A stretch of DNA of 64,000 nucleotides from Zygnema circumcarinatum SAG 698-1b (taxonomy: Eukaryota; Plantae; Zygnematophyceae). Positions within the stretch are counted from its first letter, which is position 1; every line of letters starts with the position of its first letter. Shown piece by piece: positions 16,041-21,878 of the stretch. A program made the position numbers and the translations under genes. Under the pieces are notes generated by a model. It made no database searches. It was not told the DNA's origin and saw nothing but the letters and a program-made list of their open reading frames with translations. The DNA is taken from NCBI GenBank assembly GCA_037447605.1, contig CM074812.1, positions 1,054,001 to 1,118,000 on the forward strand. The letters are read 5' to 3'.

Positions 16041-19000
16041 ATGGCGGTGCAAGCACGGCAGGAGGGAGGGGGCGCTGCAGACGGGGGGCGGAGCGAGGGG
16101 CTGTGCATGCCTACGGATGGGGAGGGGGAAGGGGCAGCCGCACTGCTGCCTCCGAATGGGGCGGCAGAGGCAGAAGCGGAGGGCGCGTTGCCTCAGGCAC
16201 GGATTCTTGCAAAGGGCGTCCTTGTGGAGCGTCAGGATGCGCCAACTGGCAATGGCGTTTCCATGGTATGGGCAGACAGAGAGCAGAGAGAGGGGTATAA
16301 AAGAGATGTCGGCCATGGCAATCCAGAGATGCTGTATGTGGACGTCGTGGGATGTGCATCGGAGTCGAGTTTGGACACAGTTGCCGTGAGACCGGACGCT
16401 GATGATCAGGCCACGGAGTGCTCGAGCTCGTTTGGGAACACGGTTGCTGAGGGGGAGAGCGATGTGGATATCAGGGGAGAGGAGCAGGAGGAGGAGGAGG
16501 CCGAGTCAGCGCCTTCTGCTCCGACTAGGGATGTGAATGGGGGAGGGCTTGGGGAGGACGACGAAGGAGGTGGCAGGTAAGCAGACGGTGATCGATAAAG
16601 GCGATGAGTTCGTTTGTTCTCTTGGCCCTTAGGTGATTCAGAAAACGCTTTACAGCGTATCCTTGTTAACAAGTGTTTCACATTTTTTTTTTGTTGTCTT
16701 GGCAATTTCACCTTACATCAAGCATGCAGTTTCAACTTTACCGCTTTCACCTGAGAAGTAAAATGCGAAGTTTTGGAGTTCAACCTTTTTAGTAATTATC
16801 GAAACGATAGCAGCCACTTTAGTGCCTGGTCTGTGACTAACCTGCTGTTCATTTAACTTGAAGAAAACTTAACGAAGATTATCGAGTACTGTCTGCCCAC
16901 AGCTTCACGTCCATATGCTAACTATAATTTGAGCTTCTTCAATGATGAGATAAGGCTGAAAGCGTTTCTGAATTTCCATTTTGACAAAAAAATGGTTGTA
17001 AGGGTTCTCTACACCATTGCTCTTTCGTTTCTTCGACCTACCTTCTACCTACCTTCAACCTATCTTTCCGATAACTGCAAGCTTACTACTTATGTCCTTG
17101 GAGAACCAGCGTAAAGCTTTAATTGAGTAAAGATTCTCTCTCCAGTCTTGGTTTTTTTGTAACTTGTTTATTATTGTTCTATTTTGTGCTGCCTGCACAT
17201 GTGTAAAGTCAGCGGAGAGTATCCACATGCTTCATAATCGCTTATGCTTATCTGAATAGAATAGTTTTTCCACAACCTTGCGTGTCTAGAACTTCTTAGC
17301 CTGCGTTTCTGGTTTTCAGTTTTGATTTGATAATTCTTTCCTTTTTTGTTCATGGTCAACTATGTCTACCTTTTGCATGCTTAACTATAAAATATTTCTC
17401 TGTGAGATCGCAGAATGTTCAATCACCTTTCCGCATCAAAATTATTGTTATTGATCAAGCTTGTTCGAGATTTTAACGGCTTTTGGTTCCTTGGCGACTT
17501 TTTCTCCTGTGGTCGTGAGCAGACGGAGGCCATTGAATGCAGAATGGAAGGAGTACCGCCACGGTATAGAATGGCGATGTCGATGGTTGGAGCTTCGCAC
17601 AAGAGAGCTGACATTATTGCAGAACCGTTACATTCAGATTTTGGATAGATTAGAAAAATCGAAAGGGGTCATCCTTACAGGGCGGTCGGCAGGCCAAGCC
17701 CTCCTCCAGGAACTTGTAGCAGACATGGGAGCAGCAGACTTTACAGATGATGTATTGGGACTAACTGGCAATGTACATATGAATCCGACCGGATCCCCGC
17801 CATTGCAATCGACAAACTATGCTTTCAACCTCCAGCAGACACCTCCTCTGACTGCTACCTCTTCCCTCCCAAGGACTCCTTCTTTGCCACCAAAAGCATC
17901 GCCCATGCCATCGTCTTATGCTAATGGTACCAACCTTGGCTATGCAACTTTACTCCTATCCACGGATGCTGATGCTGCACAAAGTCCTTTAGAAGAACCT
18001 GGACAAAGTTTTGCGGCTGTAAAGGCTGCGGAAGATGGGATTTTTCCTTTGTCTGTGACCCAGAAAGACACCGAAAGCAGTCTTAAGCTTACCCCCACCT
18101 TCACTGTTAGGAGCACTCAATCTGGCCTTGTCGCAAGGCCGAGAGCTGATAACAAGTTCGTGATAGATCAAAGTGGCCTGCAAGAAGATGGTTTAGCTGG
18201 TTGCAATGGGATTCAGACACCCACATCTTGCTCCGATAATCCCACATCAGAGACAATGCTTATGGCAACTCCTCTGCCTTTGACGCATCCTGCCGCAGGG
18301 CTGCTTAAGGATAGTACGGAGCATGCTGCTAGGACGGAAGCTGTATGGGTGGATCGGAAACGAAGGAAGAGGCTGTTGAAGAGGCAAAAACGAAGGAAAG
18401 AGGAAGACCGTGAGGATGCAGAGGAGTACCTTGCTAAGCATCCTGTGTTCTCACGATTTGGTGAGAACTACTTTCCGTGGGAAACCACCACTGTTTCATT
18501 CGCATTGATTTGGTTTGTTACTTCTGCATTGGTTGGTCTCCTCTGGCAGACTGGCTAGTGATGTTAGGTCCAGCATCACATGGGGTCTTGTGGCGCAATA
18601 CATCAGTCTTTGTTTTGCGTTGCTAGGCATGTATACCCATTGTACTCAATGATGCCTTCTGATACATGATTGATGTTCTCATGTTATGTCCAGCCAAGCG
18701 GAGAAAGGATGCAGCAACTGTAATGGAGGAGGATAGTGGCCATCGGGAACAAGTCCAAGGTAGGTTCAAACTTCAATCCTTCAGTAACGGCCTAGTCTCC
18801 TTTTAAGGACGCTAGGTTCTAGCTGAGCTAAGAAATGTTAGCAGGGCAAGGCATGGTTTTTTAATGCCAGGAGGGAATGCATTGGTGTCCGTAATGTGAA
18901 ATCAAGAGTGAATATACGGTTTAGAAACGAAGATAGAGCAGTCAGGCAGGCAGGGCCAAGCAGACACCCGTCGCGGTTGTCTTCTGAAGACATTAAAGTC

Positions 19001-21878: not shown

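Follow-up and report, generated by a model that had tools for sequence, protein, structure and literature searches.

We analyzed a 64,000-nucleotide stretch of the Zygnema circumcarinatum SAG 698-1b genome (GenBank assembly GCA_037447605.1, contig CM074812.1, positions 1,054,001 to 1,118,000 of the forward strand), referred to below as the window and numbered from its first letter. At 16041-21878 on the + strand lies an expressed six-exon gene with a product of ~1056 residues. By profile comparison, this product is a distant but real relative of KANSL1, the scaffold of the animal nonspecific lethal (NSL) complex, with homology to the PEHE domain and to KANSL1L. The gene model combines a reading of splice sites and phases with RNA contigs and has the following parts.

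16041-21878, + strand: the six-exon gene.
16041-16576, + strand: exon 1, from the ATG at 16041 to an end in phase 2, coding for an acidic N-terminus with ATECSSSFGNT; RNA covers 16049-16576 and is joined to 17520.
17520-18460, + strand: exon 2, coding for the EWK...WRCRWLELR helix, ~220 disordered residues, an AART motif like the WDR5-interacting (WIN) motif with a basic run, and HPVFSRF; RNA joints on both sides.
18694-18759, + strand: exon 3 (66 nt), coding for AKRRKDAATVMEEDSGHREQVQ; joints 18460/18694 and 18759/19379 in four RNA runs.
19379-19482, + strand: exon 4, placed by RNA joints and the family alignment; its 3′ end (19438-19482) codes for VESIEVLLGRIEALQ, the start of a second conserved helix.
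19623-20156, + strand: exon 5, a Pro/Gly/Ser-rich linker followed by RRRASDYDINNMVMPVSVSAKYVEQVRHEHIETPQWR (19947-20045), the upstream half of the PEHE region.
19623-19652, + strand: continuation of the second helix in exon 5 (family consensus LLWxIExLQxRVxxLKxQL).
20195-20729, no strand: a (TC)273 microsatellite of 535 bp (Tandem Repeats Finder), noncoding, which makes up most of intron 5 between the two PEHE halves and is skipped in RNA.
20889-21875, + strand (stop codon 21876-21878): exon 6, the downstream PEHE half, 14-residue repeats, a basic motif, and an acidic tail.

Together the exons make up 3168 nt (1056 codons), and every intron is GT..AG. Sampled words of 16041-20190, an interval of which ~53% is exon, are present at 55-84% in seven public RNA runs from the same organism (three studies), and four of the seven runs were aligned to it. 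A 2334-nt contig from one of them, run X1, carries the joints 16576/17520, 18460/18694, 18759/19379, and 19482/19623 and then passes into exon 6. Beyond 20156/20157 it reads ACACCAGCGACGAGG... (ACACCAGCGACGAGGCGTACTTGC...), which matches the window from position 20890; this joint was seen as loose-end sequence, and because the contig continues from 20156 in this way, the acceptor of intron 5 is 20888/20889. An alternative in-frame AG at 20866-20867 was ruled out by the same continuation. The X1 joints recur in three further runs, altogether four runs from three studies, and since they skip the introns, the runs do not represent DNA.

In-frame stops stand immediately 5′ of the ATG at 16041. They are TAG codons, and arise because an imperfect TTAGGG/TTAGGA telomere-like run (15950-16031) adjoins the start codon. 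The RNA contigs start at 16049, which places the 5′ end of the transcript only provisionally. Two minor joints were seen in run X2 only. One, 17925-18298, skips 372 nt of exon 2 in frame, taking out 124 residues of the disordered linker and retaining the helix and AART; the other, 19479-19593, uses an alternative acceptor that lies 27 nt 5′ of exon 5.

The motifs recognizable along the product are these.

16410-16442, + strand: ATECSSSFGNT in exon 1, its CSSSF nearly invariant across the family described below.
17542-17610, + strand: EWKEYRHGIEWRCRWLELRTREL, the helix motif, which corresponds to the EW..RWTWLQ..EL helix of KANSL1L; in 23 sequences its W, K, W, C, and W never vary.
18322-18378, + strand: HAARTEAVWVDRKRRKRLL, that is HAARTEAVWV and then basic DRKRRKRLL (HAART 18322-18336, AART 18325-18336, Arg codon 18331-18333).
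18427-18459, + strand: YLAKHPVFSRF, the green-lineage HPLFSRY motif, in which H and P never change and S and Y rarely do; the AlphaFold2 model has a short helix before it.
19947-19979, + strand: SDYDINNMVMP in exon 5.
20022-20045, + strand: HIETPQWR in exon 5.
20889-20954, + strand: DTSDEAYLRRHDPLEAKERQRY, the downstream half of PEHE, in exon 6.
21023-21494, + strand: eleven 14-residue GKGKDSAS repeats of the AGKGKDSASPASGA type, from an in-frame 42-bp unit in 11.2 copies.
21543-21572, + strand: PQGKRRKRRG, a likely nuclear localization signal, kept in the family as PKGKRRKR.

Disorder dominates the protein, which probably resides in the nucleus. With the exon 2 product modeled alone in AlphaFold2 on the family alignment, helices were predicted at residues 7-52 and 57-70 with predicted local distance difference test (pLDDT) values of 81-93 (82-93 in the first of them), while residues 81-274 mostly fell below 50; in all, 155 of the 313 residues did so, the AART site among them, in keeping with a peptide motif. 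All 19 streptophyte sequences compared keep the Arg of AART, the land-plant consensus being AARTxP, and the DRKRRKRLL that follows is a likely nuclear localization signal. The GK-rich repeat region may form a tail that contacts DNA or nucleosomes. After PEHE, liverwort orthologues carry a shorter GK/S-rich stretch, and Cymbomonas has GRGRP (AT-hook-like) repeats.

A preliminary description of this DNA, made from the letters alone, had quoted six of these peptides as parts of one spliced product. All six lie on the + strand in the order that it gave, with HAART at 18322-18336. It had also staked its case on a transcript that runs from the upstream exons into the PEHE exons; the X1 contig and its recurring joints connect the two, and the separation that would have spoken against the description is therefore not what the RNA contains.

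Searches with the window protein were all run exon by exon, without joining exons. Exon 2 alone (313 aa) matched 43 proteins at E <= 1e-3 among 1.84 billion in phmmer, the best of them from Zygnematophyceae, and because these 43 carry identical motifs in identical order, the motifs are not a product of chance. Every match that could be traced to its source belongs to the green lineage, whose members here range from prasinophytes to seed plants, and is annotated as "hypothetical" or "uncharacterized." The matches include streptophyte algae (Mesotaenium, Spirogloea, Chlorokybus), chlorophytes (Cymbomonas, Myrmecia), a liverwort (Riccia), lycophytes and ferns (Selaginella, Diphasiastrum, Ceratopteris, Adiantum), and seed plants (Welwitschia, Amborella, Nymphaea, Rumex). 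A search with the family profile adds Marchantia "MpBromo7," Ceratodon, Sphagnum, Cryptomeria, Victoria, and Pterospermum. The order common to the family begins with a bromodomain in many members and continues with CSSSF, the EWKxYRRGIEWRCRWLELR helix, AARTxP, RRKRRK, and HPLFSRY; then come the LLWxIExLQ helix, RRRxxDYDINNxVMPVSV...IETPxWR, SSDEDTDDExYxxRHxxxExxER, and PKGKRRKR. In tblastn, all window exons are collinear with the Spirogloea protein P0061 and the Riccia protein P0027 (exon 5 against P0061, E 9e-21), and the family profile finds full-length members at E 1e-148 to 1e-71. By these matches, the window protein is a clear member of the green-lineage family, and the family, spread across Viridiplantae, is not special to this genome. 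The window protein itself is absent from the sequence collections searched. When exon 2 was used in a word search limited to proteins of 172-548 aa, no match was returned, as the length limit of that search explains.

Motifs and order are common to the window protein and its relatives, for example Marchantia MpBromo7, Spirogloea SM000167S02968, Selaginella LOC9640435, and Amborella LOC18439944. The window protein differs from them in its unusually long disordered linker, its expanded 14-residue repeat, and the lack of a bromodomain, none being found anywhere in the 64-kb window at E <= 1. In many orthologues (P0061, P0027, P0073, P0013, P0019, P0078) an N-terminal bromodomain is fused to the KANSL1-like part, and the Spirogloea copies include some with a bromodomain and some without. 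In the literature searched, we found no description of this combination.

Several comparisons show homology to the PEHE domain. When the exon pieces were compared singly with Pfam, the exon 6 piece matched PEHE (PF15275) at E 0.0033 (18.4 bits, profile positions 26-59) and none of the other pieces gave a match; exon 5 gave none because intron 5 divides the domain and IETPQWR is where the Pfam model begins. Full-length orthologues match the same Pfam model at E 5e-8 to 4e-4, with 9 of 26 family members matched and the highest scores, 33.9 bits in Selaginella (E 5e-8) and 33.5 bits in Spirogloea (E 7e-8), lying just under the cut-off of 34. A newer Pfam release puts an automatic PEHE tag on several family members. 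At the level of the whole family, the profile reaches a vertebrate KANSL1L at E 5.9e-10 among 5.8 billion sequences. Aligned to KANSL1L in hhalign, it gives 97% and E 9.7e-11 over 88 columns, which include the upstream YDIDNIVIP motif and ...ILTPSWR, and in HMMER it scores 49.9 bits, against at most 6.5 bits in 2000 shuffles.

A profile of ten plant PEHE regions compared with solved structures ranks the MSL1 fragments 4DNC_D and 2Y0M_B first (E 9e-4). The alignment pairs P-x-W-R, D-D-x-x-F, R-H, and E..E-K, all of which the window protein keeps. These distant relatives were reached through family-level profiles: with exons 5 and 6 as single queries, phmmer found nothing relevant among solved structures, MSL1 being reached with the family profile only; a word search with the Spirogloea PEHE region returned plants only, animals being reached with the family alignment only; and exon 5 gave no usable match in the ESM Atlas.

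Further resemblance to KANSL1L lies in the order of its parts. In a vertebrate KANSL1L (P0093, 925 residues), the helix occupies residues ~364-409, the WIN motif (TSARTRP) 553-564, and DINN plus PEHE 750-842; the window counterparts follow in the same order, with the helix at 17542-17610, AART at 18325-18336, and DINN plus PEHE from 19947. The best KANSL1L match of a sub-profile of the plant helix is 372-409, the RWTWLQ helix (hhalign E 0.037, a score reached by 5 of 2000 shuffles), and that of a sub-profile of the AART block is 553-564, the WIN motif (E 0.041, reached by 14 of 2000 shuffles). Each of the two matches is weak by itself, yet the pair is collinear with the strong PEHE match. The land-plant AARTxP mirrors the animal AARTRP; the human WIN peptide is DGTCVAARTRPVLS (PMC4018492). 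The preliminary description had given the animal motif order, and this is the order that we found on P0093, ending in EILTPSWR and then PEHE. As a test set beforehand, it had named a significant profile match to PEHE or KANSL1; such matches came from exon 6, from the orthologues, and from KANSL1L at the values given above.

The window protein and KANSL1 are, then, both long and mostly disordered, and they have in the same order a W-rich amphipathic helix EW..RWxWL..EL, an Ala-Arg-Thr motif (WIN in KANSL1, WIN-like in the window protein), [YF]D-I-[ND]-N-x-V-x-P, and a PEHE core of the pattern TPxWR ... D-[DS]-E-x-[FY]-x-x-R-H ... E-[KR]. They differ in that sequence identity is limited to the motifs and in that the plant family has its own CSSSF, HPLFSRY, and second helix LLWxIExLQ; an N-terminal bromodomain, present in many plant members though not in the window protein, is another difference. 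The window protein also has Glu-Ala in place of Arg594-Pro595 and the eleven GK-rich 14-residue repeats after PEHE. With MSL1, of which only the crystallized fragment was compared, the likeness lies in a PEHE core that aligns to the segment crystallized on the histone acetyltransferase domain of MOF (VPSWR...LDDSVFSKRHAKLELDEKRRK, E 9e-4), and a coiled coil stands upstream of PEHE in both proteins. The MSL1 coiled coil binds MSL2, and the segment after its PEHE binds the MRG domain of MSL3; to our knowledge, no WIN motif has been described in MSL1.

The family continues into flowering plants in altered form. A link to flowering-plant orphan proteins, proposed in the preliminary description, is borne out by exon 2 matches at E 5e-6 to 9e-5 (Amborella 4.8e-6, Nymphaea 4.6e-5, Rumex 8.7e-5). 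In the alignments, these orphans have the CSSSF, WRC[HK]WLEL, and H[PN]xFS motifs in the shared order, and CSSSF, WRC[HK]WLEL, the Arg block, and HPLFS are kept in Amborella, Nymphaea, Victoria, Rumex, and Pterospermum. In none of these five did Pfam PEHE match. Against the PEHE profile, flowering-plant C-termini give a weak match to the DINN part only (E 0.0045). The core PEHE is present in the conifer Cryptomeria and looks degenerate in the alignment of Welwitschia. Flowering-plant members thus lack a recognizable PEHE core, whereas the window protein keeps it. At3g59670 may be a further example of the family.

We favor, with moderate confidence, the reading in which the product works as a KANSL1-like string of short binding motifs and belongs to a Viridiplantae-wide family that shares ancestry with KANSL1/KANSL1L, the NSL scaffold of metazoans. 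What we document above is the gene model, its expression, and the homology; the binding events that follow, and the existence of an NSL-type complex, we infer. The PEHE segment (SDYDINNMVMP...HIETPQWR plus DTSDEAYLRRHDPLEAKERQRY, split by intron 5) would act as a clamp on the acetyltransferase domain of a MYST enzyme, one of the plant HAM/MOF-Tip60 class; plant HAM1/2 group with Tip60 and MOF. The AART motif would insert its Arg into the central pore of WDR5, and the EWK..WRCRWLELR helix, together with the plant-specific CSSSF and HPVFSRF motifs and the second helix, may hold further partners. The basic runs would give nuclear import. Taken together, this suggests an unstudied NSL-type histone acetyltransferase complex in green plants.

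Several points weigh against this reading. In plants, MYST enzymes are generally placed in NuA4. Every orthologue falls short of the Pfam PEHE cut-off of 34, so that the domain is supported here by profile evidence, and the window protein's own PEHE score covers the exon 6 part rather than the whole domain. The helix and WIN matches, at E ~0.04 and with 5 and 14 of 2000 shuffles scoring as high, are weak alone and were made to one animal sequence. At the positions of animal Arg594 and Pro595, this alga has Glu and Ala, and by our estimate a chance Ala-Arg-Thr tripeptide would occur in about one in four proteins of this length. WIN motifs are, moreover, loosely defined (PMC5852437).

These same weaknesses bear on a second explanation, which we take seriously and judge unlikely: that the protein is a generic or ancestral PEHE scaffold, no nearer to KANSL1 than to MSL1, which binds a MYST enzyme via PEHE and does not recruit WDR5. 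The AART motif would then owe its conservation to another role, such as phosphorylation, methylation, or import, and would resemble WIN by coincidence. This explanation fits the individually weak helix and WIN matches to KANSL1L, the loose conservation of WIN motifs, and the loss of animal Arg594 and Pro595 in this alga; the sole solved structures matched are MSL1 fragments, and the Cymbomonas and Chlorokybus members lack Ala-Arg. It fits less well with the three collinear KANSL1L matches (helix, WIN, and DINN plus PEHE) in the right order, with a land-plant AARTxP that reproduces the animal ARTRP down to the Pro, and with a DINN motif upstream of PEHE that is common to KANSL1L, the comparison with MSL1 having covered the crystallized fragment only.

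A third explanation, that the family has been reused for a non-MYST complex such as a bromodomain-centered reader, with the PEHE-like segment as a relic that has another partner or none, seems improbable to us. The N-terminal bromodomain of many orthologues would suit such a role, and flowering plants keep the N-terminal motifs with the core PEHE unrecognizable, which argues for a conserved N-terminal function independent of PEHE. The MSL1-aligned PEHE residues (P-x-W-R, D-D/E-x-[FY], R-H, E..E-[KR]) are kept, however, from chlorophytes to conifers and in this alga, and this conservation argues for a retained partner. Finally, the idea of a pseudogene or of reading frames strung together by chance, for which one might cite the low-complexity features of the locus (the (TC)273 intron, the eleven 42-bp repeats, and the telomere-like repeats 5′), is refuted by spliced contigs from four runs in three studies and made wholly implausible by a single open frame of 1056 codons through the joined exons (from exon lengths, phases, and RNA joints) and by the collinearity of all exons with orthologues.

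A broader proposal we offer tentatively and at somewhat short of even chances. Green plants would have an NSL-type complex, and the family would be its missing KANSL1-orthologue scaffold, tethering a HAM/MOF-class MYST enzyme to WDR5. In many lineages, the bromodomain fusion would couple this writer to an acetyl-lysine reader, and the flowering-plant scaffold would have lost PEHE and become uncoupled from MYST. If true, this loss of the PEHE core would be the reason that no KANSL1 has been recognized in Arabidopsis.

In animals, the NSL complex plays a major part in regulating the promoters of housekeeping genes, and Koolen-de Vries syndrome results when one copy of KANSL1 is lost. No plant KANSL1 is described in the literature that we searched, where only a 2019 review (PMC6607013) touches on plant NSL. 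Table 1 of that review lists Arabidopsis candidates for KANSL2, KANSL3, MCRS1, WDR5, and MOF and gives a dash for KANSL1; a later paper filling this blank was not found in the literature searched. Within the same scope, the family-level picture appears undescribed, although relatives have been deposited as "hypothetical" and some carry the PEHE tag. A KANSL1-like scaffold present from prasinophytes to conifers makes the question of a plant NSL complex directly testable in Marchantia, in moss, and in algae, and it gives the flowering-plant orphan proteins an origin. The absence of the MYST-binding part in flowering plants points to lineage-specific rewiring of MYST acetyltransferase targeting.

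The sequence on either side of the gene has features of its own. About 1.8 kb upstream, proline-rich open reading frames at 13750-14652 are broken by a run of N (XXXX), an assembly gap. Just 3′ of the gene, a 56-bp tandem repeat in 3.5 copies (22155-22352) has a telobox-like core, AAACCCTAA. Farther downstream on the + strand, Arg-Ser- and Arg-Ser-Pro-rich open reading frames at 22472-22621 and 25308-25637 suggest, by their composition, an SR-protein-like gene.

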